Positions 7,271 through 28,984 of a DNA stretch of 64,000 nucleotides are shown piece after piece. Location of the stretch: contig JALDTO010000179.1 in the NCBI GenBank assembly GCA_023515725.1, positions 1 to 64,000 of the forward strand. Direction: 5' to 3'. The DNA is from Amoeboaphelidium protococcarum X5 (lineage: Eukaryota; Fungi; Aphelidiomycota). The notes beneath the pieces were generated by a model. That model ran no database searches. It worked only from the letters and a program-made list of their open reading frames with translations, and had not been told where the DNA came from. The translations under genes were made by a program, and so were the position numbers. Position 1 is the first letter of the stretch. Each line of letters starts with the position of its first letter.

Positions 7271-10200
7271 TCATTCTAGCAGCTCATCATCAAAACCCCT
7301 TCCACGCGAATGTTACATCTGGCTTTTCTCATGTGGCGGCACTATTCCATCATGCTCATCCACTCTACTCAGCGTCTCAGACTTGACTTGTGGTGATGAT
7401 GACTTCTTACCAAATGCGCGCATTTGAATGTCCTGAGAACCGCGCGATAAACTGCGATTTCTCATAGCTCCTTCCTCTGCATCAGGCTCTAACGCGTTAA
7501 CATTGTATCTCTCTTCACTATGTATAGCCTTGTATAAACTCAATCTCTTCTTATGCGCTTAAGCAACAGGTACGATAGCGTTTAGTGCCTGTTGTGACGG
7601 AGACAAATCTTCCTAAGATGATCTTGACGTATCTTTCATACCAAAATTGAATCCACAAATCTTGCAGCCATCTCCAGTTGGTAATAGACGCAGAATAACC
7701 GCCATTGGGAACACCAGTAAACCGCACAATATAGTAGTTCCCCACATAGCGCCCGTAAGCGGAGTGGTGGTGAATACAGCTCCACCAAAATACACTATTA
7801 TCACCTGAATAGGCACAGCCAACAAAAACAGTGGAATAAAAAACTTGTTCTATAAAATGCCCTTGAAGATATTGAACTTGCCATCAATCCTTCTGCAGTT
7901 GAACTCATTCAGAAGTAGCTCGAAAATGAACACATTAAACACGAGCGTACTCAGCTGAATGTAATCATTCTTCTTACTAAGATCCAGTCTAAAGATAACT
8001 GGCCCCAGGAAGACTAGAAATAGACAGGAGCAAACAATGTAAGATGACATGCCTAGAATAAGTTTCCACATTTCAACAGTAATCAGAGGATCTTTCCTGC
8101 TATCAGGCATCCTATCCAGAATATCTTCATTCGGGCGATCTGTAGATAGAGAGAGTGAGGCCTGCGAGCACATGATCATGTTAACCCAAAGCAATTGCAC
8201 CGCAGACATGATTGCCTTATTATTAGGACTGGCCACGGCACTTACGAACACGATAATAACTGCGGATATACAAGAGGTGAGCTGGAACTGTATAAACTTG
8301 CGCACCGAGTCAAAGACACTTCGACCCCACATCATGGCTTTTAAGATACTGGCAAAGTTATCATCCATTAGGATGATAGAGCTGGCTTCTTTGCACACTT
8401 CAGTACCAGTGATACCCATACTGAATCCGACGTCGGCCATTTTCAGAGCAGGTGCATCATTAGTTCCATCTCCAGTTACAGCTACAGTCTCGCCCATCTC
8501 CTTCAACTTTCCCACCAGAATCTGCTTGTCACCGGGACTAGATCTAGCTAGAACTTATAAACGCGGTAGCATTTCTTTCATTTCTTTATCAGGCAAGTTG
8601 CGAAACTATGGCCCTTCCATCACTATACCGCCTTGCATGTATATACCACACTTGGCAGCAATAGCTTTGGCAGTATTAACGTTATCACCAGTCACCATGC
8701 GAACAACCACTCCAGCCAGTTGACACTTTCTTACAGCATCAGCGACTCCATCCCGCAGAGGATCCTCAATGCCGACCAGAGCAATTATGCAGTATTTACT
8801 CAGCAGATGGGCTTCTAGTCTAGCGGCCGCGTCTTCCGGAATCTCTTTGCCCACATTCTCTGCACCAACAATATCCTTGTACTCCCCCATAGTCATATCT
8901 TTGTAAGCGATGATGATGGTACGTAGACTATCGTTCGCAAACTTGGAAATCTTCTCTTGAAGCTATACTTTATATTGATCAGACAACTGTGAAGACTAAA
9001 GGTTGTTATGAGCCTAATTATACACCATAACCTTATCAGAGTATCCTAGTACGATTTCAGACGCTCCTTTAATGTAAAAACGCACAGTATTATCATCCAA
9101 CTTGATCACGGTGATCATACTTTTACGCAGACTTGAGAAGGGATACACCTGGAGTATGGAGCTGTCTGCATCCTTCTTCAAAGAGGTGTAATCATATAAT
9201 CCCAACTTATCACAGAAATCCAGCAGTGCACATTCTGTCTTGTTACCTACATATGCGCTGGAGCCATCATCACGCTTCTCTTCAAAAACACTGGAATTCA
9301 TCAAGATAGCATCAAGAAGCAAATTCGTATACTGAACACCAGTAAAAGGATTCTTCATCAGCTACTTATGTCTCTTGTCCATAATATCGGCCTGATTCTC
9401 AGTCAATTTCTTCTTCAACTTGGCAATACCACTATCATTCTTAAATTCAGTCTTGCACCCAATGAATCCAGCCACTACAGTCATCCGATTCTGCGTCAAG
9501 GTACCAGTTTTATCACTACAAATTGTCGTTGCATTTCCCATAGTCTCACAAGCACTCAGCACACGCACCAGATTATTATCCTTCATCATTTTGATAATTC
9601 CATACGCCAATGCAATAGTAACTGCTAATGGAAGGCCTTCAGGCACAGCGACAACAATAATCACGATGGAGCCGACGACAATACCGACTATAGTCTCCAA
9701 AATAATCGGACCTTCATCCCAGCCATTAATGCTTTACGACACCAGGTACTTTATGACTAGAATGACGAGAAGTAACAAACTGACACTCACCGCAGTCTTT
9801 GCAATAGTCTCAGCCAGACCATCCAATTTCACCTGCAGAGGCGTATCATCTTCCGGTATACGCAAGCCCATCATCAACTTTCCATTGAATGAATATTCAC
9901 CGACACAGGTGACCAAGAACTGCCCGACACCTTCCGTGACCTTACTACCACTCAATATAAAAGGATCAAAATCAGCACCATCAGCATACGCAGAGTACGG
10001 AGTCTTGCGGATCAAATCAGATTCACCAGTGGCAGAACTCTCGTCACAGTGCAAGTTATGACCAGACACCATAACACCATCCACATTCACAACATCTCCC
10101 GGTTCAAGAAGGAGTATATCACCAACCACCACATCAAATATGGAGAGCATCTGCACATTACCACTCCGCAAACATTTCACCTCCCGATCTTCCTTCTTGG

Positions 10201-10690
10201 TGTTCAGCTATCGGAACTGAGCCTCCTTCTTATAATCATTGATAGATTGAACCAGGGCCACCACAATGACGGACGCGATAATCGCTACACCTTCCACCCA
10301 ATGAGGTTCTTCAGAGTCATTACTCGGTCGAAATTCCAAGTATAGTCCGATAGCGAGCGAGACCAAGGATGCCACAGTAAGAACGATCAATGTCTTATCG
10401 CGCAGAGCAAGTAAGAACAGCTGAAACAAAGTCTTTGGAGGCTATTCAGGCAAGCGATTCGCTCCGTAGAATTCAGTCCTGTCCTTGTAGTCACCATCTT
10501 TGTCTAGGCCGGAAAAAAGGTTGGTACGCAATGCTCTACACAGTCCGTCAATACCATTCAATGCACGCAGTTTCTTCACATCTTTCGGGTCAAATAACTC
10601 TTGCAATTGCCCGATCGACAGTTCAAATGAAGGAGATTCCTCAGCAGATTCTCCATCAACAATCTACTCCCCTTTATTATGCGACAACAT
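7271..10690 (-). CDS. P2B (PMCA/Pmc1-type) P-type ATPase, copy 1, divergent ion-binding site
   Basis: Intronless 1139-aa frame with TGES, PEGLPL, DKTGTLT, KGASE, TGDN and [10 protein letters not shown] motifs. Confidence 0.95.
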
Positions 10691-11432
10691 TCTGTAATGT
10701 AATATAGTAGAAAACACGTGAAAATATGAAATAAGTCAGGTAATACAATAATATTATTAAGTAAAAAAACAGTTAAAGGAAGACAAATCATGCATGGCAT
10801 ACATTTTAGTGATTCAATCAAATGTTGACGGCATGTGTAACAACGAAGATCGGCGATGATCATCCCGTGCCCGATCTTCGGGTAACTACATCACGATTTA
10901 ACTACCTAGTAGTAAAGATATTAGACTGGTAAATTCATCTACTGGTCCACTAATTAATCAATCAATGCTTAATATACTGGAAGAAAAACTTGCCGCGTCT
11001 GTGTTTGATACAGTCTTTGATCATGGAGGAGGTATAGAGCAAATCGAACGACACAAAGATTGTACGCGAGGCTGGAAAGTAAAGTGTGGGTCCAAACTAT
11101 CATACTCATAAGATTTAGGTTGAAGGCTGTTTACTTTATGATCTATTCTCACGATCCATCGATGGAAAAATACCATTGTATGTTATTGATTATGTGCACA
11201 AAGAGCATGTACTAACCAGAGGATGCCGAGACGAATGATGTGGCAAATAGTTGTCGCCTAACAAAAGAGAATGCTTTGTTAGATTTTGGCCGGTAATAGC
11301 TCGCGGAATCGTAAACAATGTCAAATAGATGTTTTAAAGATGTCATAGAGCATGCATGTACAGAAGAGTAATTTTATTTCCATTCAACTACATTGAATGT
11401 AATTTTATATTTAACAGCGATAGCGATGATAG

Positions 11433-14400
11433 TCATAGCAGTACTTCATGGCTGCTACTCATCGATGCCTACCCACGCCTGTTCGCTGTATGATAATGAT
11501 TATAATTATGATGATGGAGATCCCCCGTAGAACCGCCTTGTTCATTTAGCTAGGAGCGAAGACTTCTTAACGCGACACTCTAAGGATCATCATCGTAAAG
11601 ATAACCATGTTCAGCCAGATTACTAGACTTTCTATCTTTAGTGCGGACATTATGAGACTAGTTACGACTTCCACGCGGTAGACTGTGAACCGAGTCAGAG
11701 TTGCGAGATTGACGCGAGAGATCCCAGTCGCGATGAATAGCTTTAAACAGACTTAAACGCTGCTTAGATTAGGACTATTCGTAAAACAACTGCTACGATG
11801 GTGGAAGATTGAGCAATGCCGCGCGAGGTTCCTCTTTCATACCAAAATTAAAGCCACAGATCTTGCAACCGTCTCCCGTGGGAAGAAACCGAATGATTGC
11901 AGCTATAGGGAATACCAGCAGTCCGCATATCAAGGACACTACCCACATCGCGTTCGTGATTGGAACTGTATGGAATACTTCACCGCCATAATAGATGATT
12001 AAAACTTGAGTTGCAACAATGAGGAACAAGAGTGGGATGTAAAACTTGTTCTTGAGAATCCCTTTGAACACATTGTAACTGCCATCGATTCTTCTACAAT
12101 TAAATTAATTGAACAGAATCTCAAACAAGAATACATTAAACACCAATGCTCCGAGCTGGTACTCGTCATAACGCTAACTCACATCCAACCTGAATACCGC
12201 AGGACCCACAAAGACCAAAATCAGACACGATGTGATGCAATACACGGACTGGCCAAGTATCATTTTCCACATCTCGACAGTTATCAAAGGGTCATTTTTA
12301 CTGTCCGGCAAACGATCTAATATGTATTCTGTTGGGCGATCAGTCGCCAGAGTCAGTGCAGCAATAGAACTAATGATCATATTTATCCAAAGCAGTTAAA
12401 TCGCAGATAGAGCACTTTAATTATTGGGACTAGCTATAGCACTAATAAATACTATAGTTACGGCAGAGATACTAATGGTTAATTAGAACTAAATAAACTT
12501 GCGCACAGAATCATTCACACTTCTTCCCCACATCATGGCTTTAAGGATACTCGTAAAGTTGTCGTCCATCAATATAATATCACTAGCCTCTTTACTCACT
12601 TCAGTACCTGTGATACCCATGCTAAAACCAACATCAGCCATTTTTAGAGCAGGAGCGTCATTAGTACCATCTCCAGTCACAGCTACAGTCTCGCCCATCT
12701 CCTTTAATTTACCAACCAAAATCTATTTATCACCGGGACTAGATCTAGCTAGTACCTAGAGACGAGGTAATATTTCTTTCATTTCCTTATCAGGCAAATT
12801 ACGAAATTATGGTCCTTCCATAATTATACCACCAGTAGTATAAATTCCGCACTTTTTAGCAATAGCAGTGGCAGTGTGTACATTGTCACCAGTCACCATG
12901 CGAACAAATACACCAGCCTTCTAACATCTCTTCACAGCCTCAGGTACACCTTCACGCAGAGGATCTTCAATACCAACCAAAAGTATCACGGCCAAGTCAT
13001 GATGGCACATCTCTTCGAGCTATTCTGCAGCTTCCGCAGGCACTTCTTTACCAACATTTTTGGCTCCCACTATTTCAATATACTCGCTCATAGGCATATC
13101 TTTAAATGCAACCAAGATGGTACGAAGACTTTCATCGGCAAAACTCGATATCTTTCCAAGCATCTAGGCACGTAAAGAATCCGTGAACGGAACCACTTTA
13201 TACTGTACTGAGGCATTATCTTCCAAGACCATGATCTGACTAGCATACTTTAGCACAATCTCAGACGCACCTTTGACGTAGAATCTGACTGTGTCATCAT
13301 TAATCTTGACCACAGTGCTCATACTCTTACGCTCACTACTGAACGGATACACCTGGAAAACAGACTTGTCAGTCGCCGCCTTATAAGAAGTATAGTCGTG
13401 TAAGCCCATCTTGACACAAAATTCCAGTAGCGCAGACTCTGTCTTATTACCCACAAAAGACTTGGCACCTTTCTAGTCAACCTCCTCAAATGCATTAGAG
13501 TTCATAACAACAGAATCTATCAGGAGATTTACATATTAAGGACCGCTGAATGGCTATGATTATACCTATCTATATTTAGTATCCAGCACGTCTTCCTCCT
13601 TCTCATTCAACTTCTTCTTTAACTTGGCGATACCACTATCATTCTTAAACTCAGTCTTACAACCTATAAATCCAGCCACCACAGTCATCCGATTCTGCGT
13701 CAAAGTACCAGTTTTATCACTACAGACAGTGGTAGCATTACCCATAGTCTCACAGGCACTAAGCACACGCACAAGATTATTATCCTTCATCATTTTGATG
13801 ATTCCATAAGCCAGCGCAATGGTAACGGCCAGTGGAAGACCCTCGGGCACCACGACAACTATAATCACTGTAGAAACAACAACAATACCTACTATATTCT
13901 CAAGAATGATTGGACCCTCATCCCAACCGTTAATACTTTGCGACACCAGGTACTTTATGACTAGAATGACGAGTAATAACAAACTGACACTCACCGCAGT
14001 CTTTGCAATAGTCTCCACCAGACCATCCAACTTCACCTGCAGAGGCGTATCATCTTCAGGTATACGCAGGCCCATCATCAGTTTTCCATTAAAAGAATGT
14101 TCACCAACACAAGTTATCAAGAACTGACCGACACCTTCCGTGACCTTACTACCACTCAATATAAAAGGATCAAAATCAGCACCATCAGCATACGCAGAGT
14201 ACGGAGTCTTGCGGATCAAATCAGATTCACCAGTGGCAGAACTCTCGTCACAGTGCAAGTTATGACCAGATACCAATACACCATCCACATTGACAATATC
14301 ACCAGGCTCTAGCAGAAGTATGTCACCCACAACCACATCGAATATAGAGAGCATCTACACATTACCACTTCGTAAACATTTCACCTCCCGATCTTCCTTC

Positions 14401-14873
14401 TTGGTGTTCAATTTCCTAAACTAGGCCTCCTTCCTGTAATCATTCACAGCCTGCACAAGAACGACGATTAAAATGGAGATAAAGATCGCAAGTCCTTCTA
14501 CCCAATGCGGCTCAGTCGAAGTCTTATTAGGCCGCAGCTCCAAGAAGAGACCGACAGCAAGAGATATCACGGCGGCGACTGAGAGAACGATCAGAGTCTT
14601 ATCATGCAATGCAATCCACACCAAGCTTAGAAAGGTCTATGGCGGTTACTCAGGCAGCCTGTTCTCACCAAAATAGTCTTTCCTGATATTGATATCCTCT
14701 ACTCCATCCTTATTAAGACCAGTTTTCACATCAGATCGCAATGTTTGTTGCAATCCCTCAACACCGCCTAAGGAGTGTAGAGCAGACAAGTCTTTCGGGT
14801 CGAATAGAGCCTGCAAGTCTTCAATTTATAGAGGAAATTCATCCTCCGACGTTGGATCATATTGTAGTTCCAT
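11433..14873 (-). CDS. P2B (PMCA/Pmc1-type) P-type ATPase, copy 2 (mosaic of copies 1 and 3)
   Basis: Intronless 1146-aa frame with the same motifs; ends SHEVLL-TGA. Confidence 0.95.
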
Positions 14874-15167
14874 AATTTAAGTGTAAGAATGACAAACTAT
14901 ACGCTATAAAAGATGATTTATGAAGTACGCAAAGCTAAATAATCAATCAAGCTCCTGTACTTGAAGGACTAATAAATGGGAAATCGAAAAATTTACCATT
15001 CGTGCACCAGTATTTTTGAAAAAATTAATAAAAAATTCGACGTAAGGAGGAAGAGGAGGGAGAATTATAGAGGAAGATATTCTAATCATTTGATTTCATT
15101 ACAGAGTATCATGAAGTGGCGTGAGTCTATTTATAAACTCCGGCATCGGCGAGAATGATCAACTTTA

Positions 15168-18150
15168 TCACTGTTTCGGAACAGGACCGCCTTCAAGCAC
15201 GCATTTCGATCTTGTTCCACCGGTACAGCCTTGACTGATTCTGAGACCACAATTCTTACACTTTTTGTCTAAGCGCAGATTTTTCTACTATCCTGAGTCC
15301 GTTACGGTCGGAGTAAGATCAGTCTGTCCACCCATTTAAGGCACCACCTCATTGCTGACGAATCCAACTTAGCGCACTGTTAAAGACGAAGATTATTCTA
15401 CTACAGCAGGCTCCTCATCGTCAACAATCGCATCCAAATCCAGCTGCTCATCAAGTTCTTCGGCTACAGGATTGGCCAACAGAGTGATCATTCTATCAGG
15501 GTAGAGCTACTTACTCTCACCAACAGCCGGAAAGTGATAATCCAAGGCTACAGTTGCACTTAGCTAATGTTTCACCATTTACAGAGACAATGAGTGGAAG
15601 CTGATCGCGTTCTTTCTAGTGAGAGCCTTCAAAAACGTCTTGTAATACGACTCCAAATGTTCTGGAAGCTTGCATGTGATTGCGATTCCGTCAGGCTTTG
15701 CCTTCAATCTGCCAGCATTCCAGTCATCAGCAAACAACTTGTGGTCAATCTGCTTAAACGTGCCGCGCATATATTTTGACACACTGACATTGAAACACTT
15801 AATCTCTTCGACGCTCTATATTGGCAGATGAGGTATGAGAGTTTTCATTTTCACAGCCAAGTACTTCATGGATTCCGTATACTTCTCAATCCTTGGATCA
15901 GAGACACACACATTGACTTGCTAATCAGTGGAGACAACGGGCAAAATACCAAACGATTCGCCATGTAACTTCAACTAGTTGATAGGAGTCCACCAGTCAT
16001 GAACAGACAGACCATAAATCTTTTGCGTTATATCCTGAATCTTGTCAATCAAATCATGATCATAATGTCCAATAGTAGGAAATCCAGGACGATTCCTCTA
16101 AGATGCTCTTACATTATAGCGATTCCTCAGAACAGCAGCTGCCAGATCAGCATACTTTGGTCCAGCATTCCAAGGTTATAACTTCATTGCCAGCTTCTAA
16201 TGAACGGCACCTTCCACACTACTAGACCCACGAATACATCTGTACAAAGTTAGACCATCCTTGTCTTTACCTTTCTCATAATAAAGGGAAATGCCTTGAG
16301 GATCACTAAGACAGCCTCTGCCAGCGTGGATAAGTAGTTTGGCAAACTCCTCTTTGGCCACAGAATCCAGCAATGGCTTCCCACTATCAGGGTCCGTATA
16401 CTTTTCCTGACTAAATTCCATCAATACATGCCGCAATCTTTCAACAAGAACAGGCGCAGGTGGAATTAATCTACGGACACGCTGCAGTATATAATCAGGT
16501 TTACTATACAGTACGTCGTCGTAATTCAGACCCTTCTAGTTTAGAACACGAGCAACGTCATTCGCATCCTCCTAATTGACAACAAAGATAGCGTCACGGA
16601 GTTAGGAGCAGAACTCATACTGAAAAGCATGATGCCTTGGAATGCAAATTCTCTTCATAGCATGCCAAGCGTCTAATTTTACTCTAGAGCAACCATCACC
16701 AACAACAGGAAAAGATGCACAGTCAGTCAATTCAGTTTAAGGAGACTAGACTTCAGAATCAATTTCATTCATAATGGACGGCTGAGAGAACTGCTACTAA
16801 CCAGATACGACTGTTTCATAGATCAACAAAGAGGCTATAACATCTCTCGCTGCATATGTAATCTATAATTCTATTAGCTTTCTTGCGCTCCATTTCGAGA
16901 CTCTTACACCTTCATCTTTATCAAGCTCAAAACCCAAAAACTACTGAGTGAGAGTACGCAGACTTACTTTAGCAGATGAAATAAGGCATTTATCTTTCGC
17001 AATCTTGGCAAGATCTTCCACAGATTCAACCACTTGATTATAATCTTACATCAAAAGTCTAGCATCATCGCCAACCTTACGACCGACCTTCTTAATGCTG
17101 GCATCGCGCATAAATAGAGACAGAATAGTTGGTATCTACTTCAGATGGCACAGTTGAATAATCAGCACTTTACTACCAGGAAAACACAACTACAGTACAC
17201 TAACTTTACCTATCTTACCTTAATTACCACTGTCCTTTAAATATTCCCATTCACAATCAAATCCAACTACAAAGTCTCGTCCATCTTCTGCTTACTTCAT
17301 CTCATTGACCATGGAGCTAAATTAAACTTTTAGAGTCTATTAGTCGCTAACCACAAACACCTCACACATACCGACACCATGCAATGGCTTATGTAAGACA
17401 CCTACTTGAAAGGATGGAAATACAGATTCATCAAACTGACGGTCTTGACAGCATATACTGTATTAGTATAAACTACTTTAGGAGTCTTCATACCATTGCT
17501 TCCAAGAGTGTTGTACATTGCCTTAGGAGGCTGCGTGATATGCTGATGCGAGGTCGACTGAACAAAGCTCTAGGACCGAATCTCTTCATACTCATTTAAT
17601 ACCGTGTGAAACCTTCAAAAGTTTTAATACCACCTAACTATCCCAAATCGCGAGTGACTTTGAAGCTATGTTCAGCGCATATAACTTCTGCATCTCTTCT
17701 TTACTCTTCAAAATCAAAAAAATCCTTCTTTCTCGATATATATCATTAGCAACTTCATCATATATTTAGACTAGTCTCGGCGCGCGTTCTGCGCACCGAT
17801 GAAGTTAAATATATAAGTGTTAAAAAGCTGCATTACACCATCTATGATAATTCATTTCATTTTGTCGCTCTCTCTCTCCTTTGCGCTTTCAGCCTTGGGC
17901 TCTTCATCATCCGACTAATCTTCGTCAGATTAGTTACCATTTTGCTAACTATTTAGTTTAGTAAACCAGATCAGCCCCGCAGATTTTGATGAAGACTGTA
18001 CACTGATACTTGCAGTATTCACAATGTCTTCGATCCTTTTGGGTAGCTCCACAAAAAAAGACCGCAGCTATCCTGGCTGATTTCGTGTCCGGTCCAGCTT
18101 TCCAACTTGCCTGACACGTTCAAGACGCTTTTTGGCTTGAAGCCTTGAAT
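15168..18150 (-). mobile_element. Degenerate Dada-like DDE transposase with inserted DnaQ/WRN-type 3'-5' exonuclease
   Basis: In order: ICAEHSFK, TVLNEYEEIR, VYTN..CCQDRQF, exonuclease (VVGFDCEW, KVSVLQL, VSKWS..QITYAARD), RVKLDAWHAMKRI (DxxH), CLSDP, YRCIRGSSSVEGAVH and a terminal CxxC..C..C. Frameshifts near 17715, 17605 and 17460; open from ~17455 to TGA at 15168. Element ends not identified. Confidence 0.75.
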
Positions 18151-18976
18151 GAGGTTAATTAATCATACCTTTCAGCTAGGTAATTACGAGTAACACCAAC
18201 TTTTTTGTTGTACTGGAAGATAGATACTCCAACGACAACCTTAACACCATCGCACTTTTTGATCGCACCGGTCAGGTTACATTACCAGCAGGAGCAAAGC
18301 TTAGAAACTGGGTTTCGACAGGATAGCACTACGTCGAGTTAATCATAAGATTTCCATTCTTATGAATGGGTTCGGCGGTGATTTGGTAAAATCCTCCAAC
18401 TTCAGGAGTGTACACGCAGAATTCCCAGCCTGACGCCTCATCGTTAGGCCAAATAGACAATGCCAGTTCAGTATCAGATTTATTGAACGCAAATGTATAA
18501 GCAAAGCATATCAGAGGAAACCCATACTCATACCGCGTTTTAGGATCAGTATTCTTAGACTTTGGGACTGTTTGGATACCATCAATACCACTGAAGATAA
18601 CATTTGCGACAAAGAGGCTTTTGATTCAATTGATTGAACTATATTTAGATATTCAACCGATCGATGTGAGGAAAAAGTGAAGTGTTAGTTGAATGCGCTT
18701 TTATAACGCTGCTCTTTACTTGAATAAGCAAGCTTTGTTTAGTCTGATTTAGTATCTCATAGCGTGGATGCAATTGGTTGTCAATCTGTGTAATCTGTCT
18801 CAGTGCCTTGTTTAGTAATATGGAAGCCTGCTTTGGAAATTTATGAGCCTGATTCGTTATCTTTTCTCATTTCTAGTGGTACAAAAGCTTTTTATTTTGT
18901 GATTGATTGATGATGATGACAAAAGAATTAAACTTTAATTTAATACTTTTATAAAACTTACATAGGGTGATGGTAA

Positions 18977-21900
18977 TCATAGCAGTACTTCATGGCTGCT
19001 ACTCATCGATGCCTACCCACGCCTGTTCGCTGTATGACTATGGTTCTGATTATGATGATGAACATCCCCCGTAGAACCGCCTTGTTCATTTAGCTAGGAG
19101 CGAAGACTTCTTAACGCGACACTTTAAGGATCATCGTCGTGATGATGGGCATGTGCAGCCAGATTACTAGACTTTCTATCTTTAGTGCGGACATTATGGG
19201 ACTACTTACGACTTCCACGCGGTAGACTGTGAACCGAGTCAGAGTCGCGAGATTGGCGCGAAAGATCCAAATCGCGGTGAATAGCTTTAAACAGACTTAG
19301 ACGTCGTTTGGATTAAGACTATTCGTAAAACAATTGCTGCGATGGTGGAAGATTGAGCAAAGCCGCGCGAGGTTCCTCCTTCATACCAAAATTAAATCCA
19401 CAAATCTTACAACCGTCACCCGTAGGTAGGAAACGAATGATTGCAGCTATCGGGAATACCAACAGCCCACATATCAGAGACACCACCCACATCGCATTCG
19501 TAATCGGCACTGTATGGAACACTTCACCACCATAGTAAATGATCAATACCTAGGCGCCAACAATGAGGAACAAAAGGGGGATATAAAATTTATTCTTGAG
19601 AATACCCTTAAACACATTGTAACTACCATCGATTCTTCTGCTGTTAAACTGGTTAAACAGAATCTCAAACAAAAACACATTATACACCAGAGCTCCAAGT
19701 TGATACTAGTCATAACGCTGACTTACATCCAATCTAAAAACAGCAGGACCGACAAAGAACAGTATCAGACAGGATGTAATGCAATACGCGGACTGGCCAA
19801 GTATCATTTTCCACATCTCGACAGTGATCAGCGGATCATTTTTGCTGTCTGGGAAACGATCTAAAATGTCTTCAGTTGGACGATCAGTCGCCAGAGTCAA
19901 GGCAGCAATAGATCCAATGAGCATGTTGATCCAGAGCAATTATATAGCCGACAAGGCACTTTAGTTATTGGGACTAGCTATAGCGCTAACAAATACAATA
20001 GTCACAGCTGATATACTAATGGTCATTTAAAATTGAATGAACTTGCGCACAGAATCATTCACACTTCTTCCCCACATCATGGCTTTAAGGATGCTAGTAA
20101 AGTTGTCATCCATCAATATGATATCACTGGCTTCTTTACTAACCTCTGTACCTGTGATGCCCATACTGAAACCAACATCAGCCATTTTTAGAGCAGGGGC
20201 ATCATTAGTACCATCACCAGTCACAGCTACAGTCTCGCCCATCTCCTTCAACTTACCAACCAGAATCTGCTTATCGCCAGGACTAGATCTAGCTAGTACC
20301 TATAGACGAGGTAGCATTTCTTTCATTTCCTTATCAGGCAAATTGCGAAATTATGGTCCTTCCATTATTACACCACCAGCAGTGTAAATTCCACACTTTT
20401 TGGCAATAGCAGTGGCAGTGTGCACATTGTCACCAGTCACCATGCGAACAAATACACCAGCCTTCTAGCATCTCTTCACCGCCTCAGGTACACCTTCACG
20501 CAGAGGATCTTCAATACCAACCAAAAGTATCACGGCCAAGTCATGATGGCACATCTCTTCGAGCTACTCTGCAGCTTCCGCAGGCACTTCTTTACCAACA
20601 TTTTTGGCTCCCACTATATCAATATACTCGCTCATAGGCATATCTTTAAATGCAACCAAGATGGTACGAAGACTTTCATCAGCAAAACTCGATATTTTGC
20701 CAAGCATCTAGGCACGTAAAGAATCCGTGAAAGAAACCACTTTATACTGTACTGAGGCATTATCTTCCAAGACCATGATCTGACTAGCATACTTTAGCAC
20801 AATCTCAGACGCACCTTTGACGTAGAATCTGACCGTGTCATCATTAATCTTGACCACGGTGCTCATACTCTTACGCTCACTACTGAACGGATACACCTGG
20901 AAAACAGACTTGTCAGTCGCCGCCTTATAAGAAGTATAGTCGTGTAAGCCCATCTTGACACAAAATTCCAGTAGCGCAGACTCTGTCTTATTACCCACAA
21001 AAGACTTGGCACCTTTCTAGTCAACCTCCTCAAATGCATTAGAGTTCATAACAACAGAATCTATCAGGAGATTTACATATTAAGGACCGCTGAATGGCTA
21101 TGATTATACCTATCTATATTTAGTATCCAGCACGTCTTCCTCCTTCTCATTCAACTTCTTCTTTAACTTGGCGATACCACTATCATTCTTAAACTCAGTC
21201 TTACAACCTATAAATCCAGCCACCACAGTCATCCGATTCTGCGTCAAAGTACCAGTTTTATCACTACAGACAGTGGTAGCATTACCCATAGTCTCACAGG
21301 CACTAAGCACACGCACAAGATTATTATCCTTCATCATTTTGATGATTCCATAAGCCAGCGCAATGGTAACGGCCAGTGGAAGACCTTCTGGCACAGCGAC
21401 AACAATAATAAGAACAGACAGAACAAAAATCTTTATGAAGTTCTCAAATACTACTGGGCCCTCATCCCAGCCAGTAGTACTCTGTTGTATTATATACTTG
21501 ATAACCAGAATCAATAGCAGTAAAAGACTGACACTTACTGCAATTTTGGCAATATTCTCTGCCAGTTCGTCCAGCTTTATCTACAGAGGTGTATCCTCAG
21601 ATGGAACGCGCAAGCTCATCATCACCTTCCCGCTGTAAGAGAACTCGCCAACACATGTTACAAGAAACTGGCCAACTCCCTCAGTAATTTTACCACCACC
21701 TAATATAAAAGGATCAATATCATCAGCATTTTCGGCGTACGGAGCTTTTCTGATAATATCTGACTCTCCAGTGGCAGAACTTTCATCACAGCGCACATTG
21801 TGTCCAGAGATGAGAATGCCGTCCACATTCATAACATCACCAGGCTCAAGCAGTAGAATATCACCAACCACAATATCAAATACAGACAACATCTAAACCT

Positions 21901-22411
21901 ATCCGCTACGCAGGCACTTTACCAGACGATCTTCCTTCTTGGAATTCAATTTCCTAAACTGAGCCTCCTTTCTGTAATCATTCACAGCCTGTACAAGAAC
22001 AACAATCAGAATAGAGATGATAATAGCCAGTCCTTCTACCCAATGAGGCTCAGTGGACGTCTTATTAGGCCGCAGTTCCAAGAAGAGACCGACGGCAAGG
22101 GATATCACGGCGGCGACTGAGAGAACGATCAGAGTCTTATCGTGCAAGGCAATCCACACTAACGATAGAAAGGTCTAAGGCGGTTACTCAGGCAGCCTGT
22201 TCTCACCGAAGTATTCTTTCCTGGAATTAATGTCCTCCACTCCATCCTTATTAAGACCAGTTTTCACATCAGATCTCAGTGCCTACTGCAATCCCTCAAC
22301 ACCGCCCAAAGAGTGTAGAGCAGCCAAGTCTTTAGGGTCAAAGAGAGCCTGTAAGTCTTCAATCTAGAGTGGAAATTCATCCTCCTACTTGGGAGAATAT
22401 TGAGGTTCCAT
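18977..22411 (-). CDS. P2B (PMCA/Pmc1-type) P-type ATPase, copy 3
   Basis: Intronless 1144-aa frame, near-identical to copy 2 over most of its length (offset 7544 bp in the central and 3' parts). Confidence 0.95.
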
Positions 22412-27415: not shown

Positions 27416-28984
27416 ATGTTGAGACAGATCGCTACTCAAAGATTGTTTGCTAGTGGTTCGGTAAAGTCTGCTACTCCGCACAAGACTAAATTGTTCATCA
27501 ATGGAGAATTTATCGACTCGCAGACTAACAAATGGATAAAGGTGATCAATCCTGCCACGTAAGAGCTGGTGACATTGGTTCCCGAGGCTACACCATAAGA
27601 GTTAAAGTATGCGTCTGAGGTTGCACAGTCGGCATTCAAGTAATGGAAGGATACTACAGTGTTGACAAGGTAGCGAGTGATGCTAGATCTGCAACTGCTA
27701 GTGAGAGAGAATACGGACAAGATTGCAGAGTCTATTACGACTGAACAAGGTAAGACTTTTCAGGATGCGCGCGGTGATGTGTTTAGAGGTTTGCAGGTGG
27801 TTGAGCATGCATGTGCTATTCCAACGCTGAGTATGGGTGAGTATTCTCATCAAGTGTCTGCCAGTATGGATACTTACACATTTCGCTAGCCATTAGGAGT
27901 TACTGCTGGCATATGTCCATTTAATTTCCCCGCGATGATTCCATTGTGGATGTTCCCGCTTTCTATTGCATGCGGTAACACTTCCATTATTAAGCCGAGT
28001 GAGAAGGATCCTGGTGCCATGATGATCCTGGCCAAGTTGGCTCAGGAAGCTGGAGTTCCTAAAGGTGTGCTGAATGTTGTGCATGGAGCTGTTGATACAG
28101 TCAACTTTTTGTGCGATGATGCCAACATTAAGGCTGTGTCTTTTGTAGGCGGTGATGCTGCAGGTAAACATATTTATTCCAGTGCCACCGCCAATGGTAA
28201 ACGTGCCTAGTGTAATCTTGGAGCCAAGAATCACGGTGTGGTGATGGATGATGCTGATCCTTAAGCTGTAGATCAGCTGGTTGGCGCAGCGTTCGGTGCA
28301 GCCGGGTAGAGATGTATGGCTCTATCTGTTGCCATATTTGTCGGTCCTAAATCTGATGCTCTTATTGAACGTGTTCTGCAGAAGGCAAAAGAGTTGAAAG
28401 TTACTGGTGGCTTCGAGTAGGATGCCGATCTTGGTCCAATGATAACACAGTAGGCCAAGTAGCGTGCTGAGAATATCATTGGCGCATCTGTACAAGAGGG
28501 TGCTGAGCTATTACTGGATGGTAGAAATCCTTAGCATATCGCGGAAAAGTACAAGAAGGGCAATTTCCTTGCTCCCACGGTATTGTCTAATGTCAAGCCT
28601 GAAATGTCTTGCTATAAGGAGGAAGTGTTTGGGCCTGTGCTTAGCATAGTAAAGGTGGACACTCTGGACGAGGCTATTGATATTGTGAACAAGAATCCAT
28701 ATGGCAATGGATGTGCTCTGTTTACCACTAGCGGACACTCTGCTAGAAAGTTTTAGCATGAAGTTGACGTGGGATAGATTGGAATTAACGTTGCAATCCC
28801 CGTACCATTGCCATTCTTCTCCTTTACAGGCAGTAGAAACTCTATCCGCGGTGATGTGCACTTCTATGGCAAGGAGGGAGTATAGTTTTATACTTAGACT
28901 AAAACCGTTACGCAGTCGTGGAAGGAGCCGTCTCATGAAAGTAAGAGCTCTGGCGGTCATTTGAACATGCCTGTAATGAAATGA
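27416..28984 (+). CDS. ALDH6A1: Methylmalonate-semialdehyde dehydrogenase (acylating), mitochondrial
   Basis: [47 protein letters not shown] (catalytic Cys), EEVFGPV and [12 protein letters not shown]; 522 aa, intronless. Confidence 0.96.

Follow-up and report, generated by a model that had tools for sequence, protein, structure and literature searches.

PMCA-type ATPases with a rebuilt ion site encoded in tandem in the aphelid Amoeboaphelidium protococcarum

Introduction

Do pumps of the PMCA type still carry calcium when one of the side chains that binds the ion has gone? The question is raised by three tandem genes of Amoeboaphelidium protococcarum X5, an aphelid, that is, an algal parasitoid and sister to Fungi. 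They lie in a stretch of 64,000 nucleotides (positions 1 to 64,000 of contig JALDTO010000179.1, assembly GCA_023515725.1), which is called the window throughout. Amoeboaphelidium reads TAA and TAG as glutamine, and with this code the minus strand of the window holds three intronless genes, c1, c2 and c3 (copies 1 to 3), for PMCA-type (P2B) ATPases. A first-pass annotation, made from the letters of the DNA, had proposed that all these pumps lost the Ca2+-ligand aspartate of membrane helix 6 (M6) and kept their catalytic motifs. We report here that the encoded proteins are P2B ATPases by profile, fold and descent, yet lack the residue set that defines the P2B Ca2+ site, and that, as far as can be judged from sequence, they probably pump something else, or calcium differently.

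The residues in question have been assigned roles in animal pumps. The Ca2+ ion of mouse PMCA2 is coordinated through the backbone of V407, V408 and V410 and through three side chains, those of E412, N869 and D873, of which D873 forms a 'bracket' with Q837 of M5 (PMC12488499). Upon Ca2+ release, N841 of M5 joins D873 and Q837, and D873, its pKa now raised, picks up the counter-proton. The N841D mutation nearly abolishes transport, comparably to mutations of the site itself, and a water-lined C-terminal path serves as the exit of the counter-ion (PMC12488499). The site of human PMCA1 consists of E433, N891 and D895, with Q983 in place of SERCA E908 (PMC6127144).

Results

Scanned for motifs in six frames, the minus strand showed P-type ATPase signatures in three collinear sets, and a listing of open reading frames (ORFs) of 7271-22411 under the standard code gave short ORFs only. 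With TGA as the sole stop and codons counted from the first methionine, c1 extended over 7271-10690 (1139 codons and TGA; 14 in-frame TAA/TAG), c2 over 11433-14873 (1146 codons and TGA; 29 in-frame TAA/TAG) and c3 over 18977-22411 (1144 codons and TGA; 29 in-frame TAA/TAG). The 3.4-kb frame of c1 runs without a frameshift, its interruptions being 10 TAG and 4 TAA codons and no TGA, and it terminates with TGA at 7271-7273. The frames of c2 and c3 likewise contain neither an in-frame TGA nor a frameshift, and close with TGA at 11433 and 18977. The products of c1 and c2 are identical to database proteins P0151 and P0154, respectively, and the c3 protein is 92% identical to c2; P0151, P0154 and P0155 served as queries in full-length searches. 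NCBI proteins of A. protococcarum, translated with glutamine, agree with the frames of the c1-c3 region. The entries for c1 and c2 are labelled as hypothetical proteins only, and near-identical entries exist from a second strain. No c3-type protein was among the hits of a word-indexed protein search. In the literature library searched, there was no mention of the altered pumps and nothing usable on mutants of PMCA Asn879 or Asp883.

Read with the standard code, each gene would carry 14 to 29 in-frame stops, and this is what speaks for decaying duplicates or pseudogenes, or for an artefact of assembly or annotation. We regard that account as hardly credible. The stops are TAA or TAG only, with no TGA and no frameshift over three genes of 3.4 kb each. 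In the three genes these codons mostly stand opposite glutamine (24 of 34, counted in family alignment columns with a clear consensus), and all other genes of the genome use them as well. Moreover, the ratio of nonsynonymous to synonymous substitution rates (dN/dS) is 0.05-0.11, and another contig and a second strain carry the same genes. The frames are therefore uninterrupted, as had been claimed, under the code with TAA/TAG as glutamine alone; under the standard code the claim does not hold, with 14, 29 and 29 stops in c1, c2 and c3. Pseudogenes and decay of the repeat-induced point mutation type were rejected as candidates on the ground that all in-frame stops are TAA/TAG and frameshifts are absent.

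The catalytic motifs TGES, DKTGT, TGDN and GDGTND, by which the P-type ATPase superfamily is recognized, are intact in all three genes, as had been stated in the first-pass annotation, and their columns are invariant in the alignment. The Ca2+-site glutamate of M4 is also retained; the motif scan located its PEGL signature at 9632-9643 in c1, 13836-13847 in c2 and 21380-21391 in c3 (all on the minus strand, as are the positions that follow), and the glutamate is present in seven of seven altered sequences, as we call c1, c2, c3 and their closest counterparts. The helices beyond M4 are different. In M5, the asparagine of the family, equivalent to N841 of PMCA2, is replaced by cysteine (TGT) in c1 (QLTSC, 8270-8284) and by serine (AGT) in c2 (QLTIS, 12471-12485) and c3 (QMTIS, 20015-20029), as judged from the alignment. 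M6 retains its asparagine, and the Ca2+-ligand aspartate has become cysteine in c1 (WVNMIMCS, 8165-8188; TGC, 8168-8170), serine in c2 (WINMIISS, 12366-12389; AGT, 12369-12371) and glycine in c3 (WINMLIGS, 19910-19933; GGA, 19913-19915). In M7, a glutamine found in 258 of 264 family members is isoleucine in c1 (SYIVCSC, 8024-8044) and cysteine in c2 and c3 (YCITSC, 12225-12245 and 19769-19789), and a new Ser-Cys pair is present in all altered copies. In M8, a new glutamate stands one position ahead of a lost glutamine, which is leucine in c1 (FIFELLLNE, 7904-7930; glutamate codon GAG) and isoleucine in c2 and c3 (FLFEILFNQ, 12105-12131 and 19649-19675).

The M5, M6 and M8 replacements were confirmed column for column when the stop-free piece 7853-8554 of c1 was compared with the sequences of solved structures by HMMER. 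The best matches were PMCA2, ACA8 and PMCA1 (E about 1e-63), followed by SPCA, PfATP4, SERCA and Na,K-ATPase from 1e-38 downward. In the alignment QFQLTSCI of c1 faces QFQLTVNV of PMCA in M5, WVNMIMCS faces WVNLIMDT in M6, and FIFELLLNE faces FV(M/L)MQLFNE in M8; the new M8 glutamate falls one residue ahead of the SERCA E908 column. The single P2B Ca2+ site, composed of the M4 glutamate and the asparagine and aspartate of M6, is thus incomplete, with the glutamate and asparagine present and the aspartate gone in seven of seven altered sequences. The glutamine-asparagine pair of M5 and the polar glutamines of M7 and M8 are affected as well: equivalents of Q837 and N869 of PMCA2 are kept, and the other three, the M5 asparagine and both glutamines, are replaced. 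The M5, M6 and M8 substitutions are therefore as first described; the loss of the M7 glutamine, the non-standard code and a canonical paralogue, described below, were found in addition.

We investigated how common such substitutions are among relatives. A search of 1.84 billion representative proteins with the stop-free piece returned 39,320 hits, and a full-length protein was searched against a word-indexed collection; the best 150 and the best 120 hits were aligned with the local copies by MAFFT, which gave 267 other PMCA-type sequences. The M6 aspartate is retained in 264 of these 267, the exceptions being two metagenomic fragments with asparagine and one misaligned row. The M5 asparagine is retained in 259 of 267 and the M8 glutamine in 251 of 262 filled cells, and no properly aligned sequence among the 267 has an acidic residue at the position of the new M8 glutamate. 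The same substitutions are thus not common in fungal Pmc1 proteins; had they been common there, this would, according to the first-pass annotation, have counted against it. The two metagenomic fragments, P0008 and P0082, are the sole other properly aligned relatives without the M6 aspartate, and P0082 also has serine for the M5 asparagine. They differ from the altered copies in that the change from aspartate to asparagine is conservative, the M8 glutamate is absent and the sequences are fragments; they may represent independent cases of site remodelling.

Conservation reaches at least 90% in 235 family columns, and in 13 of these all seven altered sequences differ from the family; the canonical gene of the species shares the departure in five. 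The remaining eight (c1 numbering) are G300A, V783L, V806x, N807C/S, L838M, D841C/S/G, Q885I/C and Q925L/I, to which the gained E924 is added. Six of the eight lie within M5-M8, in support of the earlier proposal of a rebuilt transport site. The composition of this region has also shifted. The c1-type M5-M8 region contains 5 cysteines and 18 cysteines plus serines, compared with family medians of 1 and 4 and maxima of 4 and 13 (264 proteins), and the sum of asparagine, glutamine, aspartate and glutamate in M5-M8 is 11 in the altered copies against a family median of 15. Since the lost residues act jointly in Ca2+ binding and proton exchange of PMCA2, their loss together points to coordinated rebuilding rather than drift.

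Membership of the family was examined by profile, fold and tail sequence. The altered protein contains the five Pfam P-type domains. With the PMCA profile TIGR01517 (cut-off 507 bits), c1 scored 953 bits, c2 978 and the canonical paralogue 1007, whereas the altered copies reached 278-280 bits with the ENA (P2D) profile TIGR01523, whose cut-off is 645. An AlphaFold model of c1, computed from a 60-sequence alignment and used for the fold, had a mean pLDDT of 79.9 (85-96 across M5-M10) and a pTM of 0.74; its domains and helices are as expected, M4 being broken at PEGL. The closest folds were PMCA2 states (TM score 0.78-0.81), then ACA8 and PMCA1. The C-terminal tail of the canonical paralogue holds LVMTRERLQWQHAIGSVRTQLHVFKALRG, which gave a weak collinear HMMER match, including the tryptophan, to residues 1076-1110 of PMCA2, which we take to be the calmodulin-binding segment; the domain E-value of the match is not significant alone. 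The canonical tail by itself gave nothing meaningful against PDB sequences, the weak match being obtained with a longer query. The tail of the altered copies keeps RLSL(Y/F)KAIH only, without the tryptophan, in line with the earlier remark that the Trp-anchored pattern is missing. This loss fits a release from Ca2+/calmodulin control, to the extent that so weak an alignment suggests it. As a separate observation, the animal calmodulin-binding domain is reviewed as having arisen with multicellularity (PMC10654040), and a Trp-containing, calmodulin-site-like segment is seen, by the same weak alignment, in the tail of an aphelid canonical PMCA.

The altered proteins, which remain typical of the PMCA type in profile and fold, might still be Ca2+ pumps. 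On this account the M6 carboxylate has moved to M8 and rebuilds, with the M4 glutamate, the M6 asparagine and backbone carbonyls, a divalent site, which might differ in affinity, in stoichiometry or in its coupling to H+, or might prefer Mn2+ or Mg2+. The site region has indeed as many acidic residues as before, aspartate being lost and glutamate gained in seven of seven sequences, and M4 PEGL with its flanks and the M6 asparagine are invariant. However, 264 of 267 relatives keep the aspartate, which binds Ca2+ directly in PMCA2 and PMCA1, and its partners, the M5 asparagine and the M7 and M8 glutamines, are lost too, which resembles a dismantled Ca2+/H+ apparatus and not fine-tuning. In addition, the new glutamate is one residue ahead of the SERCA E908 column, and the tryptophan of the canonical paralogue's calmodulin-site-like tail is gone. 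We therefore consider retained calcium transport of this kind unlikely, though worth keeping in view.

The genome context was inspected in the whole assembly (23.6 Mb, 346 contigs), in which seven PMCA-type loci score above the TIGR01517 cut-off. Three are in the window, two altered ones, one c1-like and one c2/c3-like, are on a second contig (C181), and two are canonical, at 34403-37300 of contig C137 and 126113-129010 of C181. The canonical genes are nearly identical to each other and read QFQLTVNIS, WVNLIMDS and FIFLQLFNQ; about 38 kb separate the one on C181 from the altered pair. A single contig of the second strain likewise encodes a canonical protein (MP228_000331) and altered ones (MP228_000356 and MP228_000358). 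The statement that all pumps lost the M6 aspartate is thus correct for the tandem cluster and does not extend to the genome, which keeps canonical PMCA with WVNLIMDS. The view of an expanded subfamily is borne out by the three copies of the window, the two on C181 and the further copies of the second strain. Canonical and altered proteins share 61-67% identity within one genome, which further holds SERCA, PMR1, a true ENA (TIGR01523, 853 bits), a Na/K-class pump and other P-type pumps.

In a maximum likelihood tree of 38 sequences (LG+C20, quick search, with support from the Shimodaira-Hasegawa-like approximate likelihood ratio test only), the altered copies fall inside the PMCA clade of aphelids and fungi. 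All seven altered sequences group together (support 100), and the canonical PMCA of A. protococcarum is their sister (support 100). In the enclosing aphelid clade (100), the other members, from A. occidentale, Paraphelidium tribonemae and a metagenomic relative, are all canonical, and the altered form was not found in A. occidentale (among annotated proteins) or in P. tribonemae. Since these other sampled aphelid parasitoids have the canonical form only, a link of the altered pumps to parasitoid life, which had been suggested, is unsupported. After the duplication, 0.13 substitutions per site accumulated on the canonical branch and 0.19 on the altered stem, followed by a further 0.14 in c2/c3 or 0.30 in c1. 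By these results the altered subfamily is young, lineage-specific as far as databases show, and moderately accelerated.

Selection on the altered genes was estimated by the Nei-Gojobori method with the organism's own code. The c1 gene and its C181 counterpart gave dS 0.38, dN 0.020 and dN/dS 0.05; c2 and c3 gave 0.52, 0.045 and 0.09; and c3 and the c2/c3-like copy of C181 gave 0.53, 0.028 and 0.05. Between altered and canonical genes synonymous sites are saturated. Whole-gene ratios, ranging from 0.05 to 0.11, are not near 1, the value that, combined with a lack of expression, had been named beforehand as adverse to the first interpretation. In the rebuilt region the ratios between c2 and c3 are 0.04 for M5-M6 (dS 0.955, dN 0.038) and 0.015 for M7-M10 (dS 1.5, dN 0.023). 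Purifying selection is therefore strong, including on the rebuilt helices, and the membrane half that holds them ranks with the most constrained regions. The former aspartate site is fixed by paralogue type, with cysteine in the c1 type (four sequences, two strains) and serine in c2 and the c2/c3-like copy of C181. Its codons, GAC in the canonical gene, TGC in c1, AGT in c2 and GGA in c3, fit a putative path with a single step from aspartate to glycine, followed by changes from glycine to cysteine and from glycine to serine. We also observed that the two genome versions have diverged very unevenly, with dS of 0.38-0.53 between the altered genes of the window's contig and C181 and of 0.016 between the canonical genes of C137 and C181.

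Sliding-window nucleotide identity, with a background of about 60%, revealed conversion tracts that make c2 a mosaic. Its A domain to M3 (13980-14459) is 88-97% identical to c1 (9775-10255), and 13380-13859 is 100% identical to c3; the latter includes 13440-13799, where c2 matches the canonical PMCA gene of other contigs with 88-93% identity. From M5 to M10, c2 is 98-100% identical to the C181 copy. The tracts, including those shared with the canonical gene, span the cytoplasmic A, P and N domains, and M5-M8 is unreverted in every copy. Because M5-M8 never returned to the canonical state despite this exchange, we think that selection keeps the rebuilt site.

The strength of selection also bears on the possibility that the altered proteins transport no ion at all. 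Their ATPase cycle would then serve another end: the proteins could be uncoupled ATPases, sensors or scaffolds, or could regulate the canonical pump, their membrane domain being conserved for nothing but folding and partner binding. Such a role would be in keeping with the loss of four conserved polar side chains from the membrane core, where hydrophobic or small ones mostly replace them, with the reduced sum of 11 against a median of 15 mentioned above, and with the variation of the aspartate-site residue among paralogues. Nevertheless, M5-M10 evolves with dN/dS of 0.015-0.04, equal to or below the catalytic domains, and the M4 site residues and the M6 asparagine are invariant. A buried charged residue in M8 would be costly unless used, and it is fixed in all copies; multiple copies are moreover kept in two strains. 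Overall we judge this alternative rather improbable.

Whether the genes are transcribed was approached through public sequencing data. No sequencing run recorded as RNA contains c1-c3. In three runs of unrecorded kind from one study, contig depth was about 10-30 over c1, 0-4 over the c1-c2 intergenic region and 160-600 over c2; these are rough figures, in which c2, c3 and the C181 copy would be merged. Such differences in depth between adjacent stretches resemble the profile of RNA rather than that of genomic DNA, a hint that both types are expressed, c2-like genes more strongly.

Several other features were noted around the cluster. The region between c2 and c3 contains an 805-codon ORF (15168-17585, minus strand) with a DEDD-exonuclease-like 'DCEWE' motif that belongs to a dispersed repeat family. 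A 112-amino-acid piece of it has 34 scattered matches in the genome, many of them identical, and Pfam searches with its stop-free pieces gave no match. It is a mobile-element protein and not part of the pumps. It does, however, mark the duplication into c2 and c3, and the pair with this intervening ORF occurs in this contig's version of the cluster only; the ORF is absent from the C181 version. Further along, an aldehyde dehydrogenase piece at 27890-28207 on the plus strand (Pfam PF00171, E 1.5e-35) is an ordinary neighbour. Elsewhere in the genome, none of the 7 scored of 59 candidates reached the cut-off of TIGR01647, the profile of Pma1-type H+-ATPases, the best value (422 bits) coming from the PMR1 locus; A. 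protococcarum, a relative of Fungi, may be without the fungal plasma-membrane proton pump.

Discussion

We consider the odds slightly in favour of c1, c2 and c3 being working P-type pumps with a changed ion chemistry, activity and different substrate alike being suggested by sequence. The whole ATP-driven machinery of phosphorylation and dephosphorylation and the M4 half of the ion site are retained. The other half, together with the adjoining counter-ion path, has been re-engineered: a small residue takes the place of the M6 aspartate, the M5 asparagine and the M7 and M8 glutamines give way to cysteine, serine or hydrophobic residues, and a carboxylate is put on M8 instead. Such a protein would most likely run through an ordinary E1/E2 cycle, with gating and transport no longer tied to the canonical exchange of one Ca2+ per H+. 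A glutamate of M4, backbone carbonyls, one asparagine and side chains with hydroxyl or thiol groups would suit a monovalent cation such as Na+, K+ or H+; a softer metal would be a less probable fit. We propose, with a probability of roughly 0.45, that a new specificity, for a monovalent cation or, in the thiol-lined c1 type, for a soft metal, arose by PMCA duplication in a single aphelid lineage and has been maintained by selection against ongoing conversion from the canonical gene.

Several observations weigh against a working pump with changed ion chemistry. An ENA pump and a Na/K-class pump are encoded in the genome already, so the need for a further monovalent pump is not evident. The aspartate-site residue differs among paralogues (cysteine, serine or glycine), and the position may therefore no longer bind an ion. 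The M4 glutamate and M6 asparagine, which are specific Ca2+ ligands, stay invariant. The new M8 glutamate is one residue off the SERCA E908 position and may not point into the site. Finally, expression is only suggested, the kind of the runs being unrecorded.

The cluster deserves attention for what it could reveal about specificity. Shifts in the specificity of P-type pumps are usually inferred across billion-year-old subfamilies, whereas here ancestral and derived genes share one genome. Only eight family-invariant positions have changed, six of them in M5-M8, which provides a short, testable list for the conversion of a site. If the proposed change of specificity is correct, it would be a natural and datable substrate change of a P-type ATPase with the ancestral form alongside for comparison, and the profile-based label 'calcium-translocating P-type ATPase, PMCA-type' would misname the altered proteins.

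The nearest known systems are the P2B pumps (PMCA1-4, ACA8 and Pmc1), which give the best matches by sequence, profile and fold, with 39-40% identity to mouse PMCA2. The altered copies share with them all catalytic motifs, the ten-helix layout, PEGL of M4 and the M6 asparagine; they differ in lacking the M6 aspartate, the M5 asparagine, the M7 and M8 glutamines and the tail tryptophan seen in the canonical paralogue, and in having an extra M8 glutamate.

ENA pumps provide a precedent for P2 pumps without the M6 aspartate that carry monovalent cations. The pair T855/S856 of N. crassa ENA1 presumably falls in the columns of SERCA T799/D800. In A. protococcarum itself, the ENA (273705-276647 of contig C158; TIGR01523, 853 bits) has IPAGLP in M4, without glutamate, and LNMLTST in M6, which compares with INMIISS of c2 in placing a small hydroxyl residue at the aspartate position of Ca2+ pumps. 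In N. crassa ENA1, where the equivalent pair of TM6 is T855/S856, the mutation S856A lowers salt tolerance (PMC10779151). ENA pumps differ from the altered copies in that they keep asparagine and glutamate in M5 and have no M4 glutamate, whereas the altered copies keep the M4 glutamate and lack the polar pair of M5. With about 280 bits for TIGR01523, the altered copies are not kin of ENA by descent, and the likeness would be in the possible working of the site, not in membership.

A further comparison is offered by PfATP4, which was originally named a Ca2+-ATPase from its sequence and whose structure is deposited as 'Non-SERCA-type Ca2+-transporting P-ATPase' (PDB 9n10). It is reported to be a Na+ efflux pump (PMC12537908), and PfATP4 illustrates how family-level names can mask another substrate. 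It is distant from the altered copies (E 1.8e-34, against 1e-63 for PMCA) and belongs to another subfamily, not being a recent derivative of PMCA.

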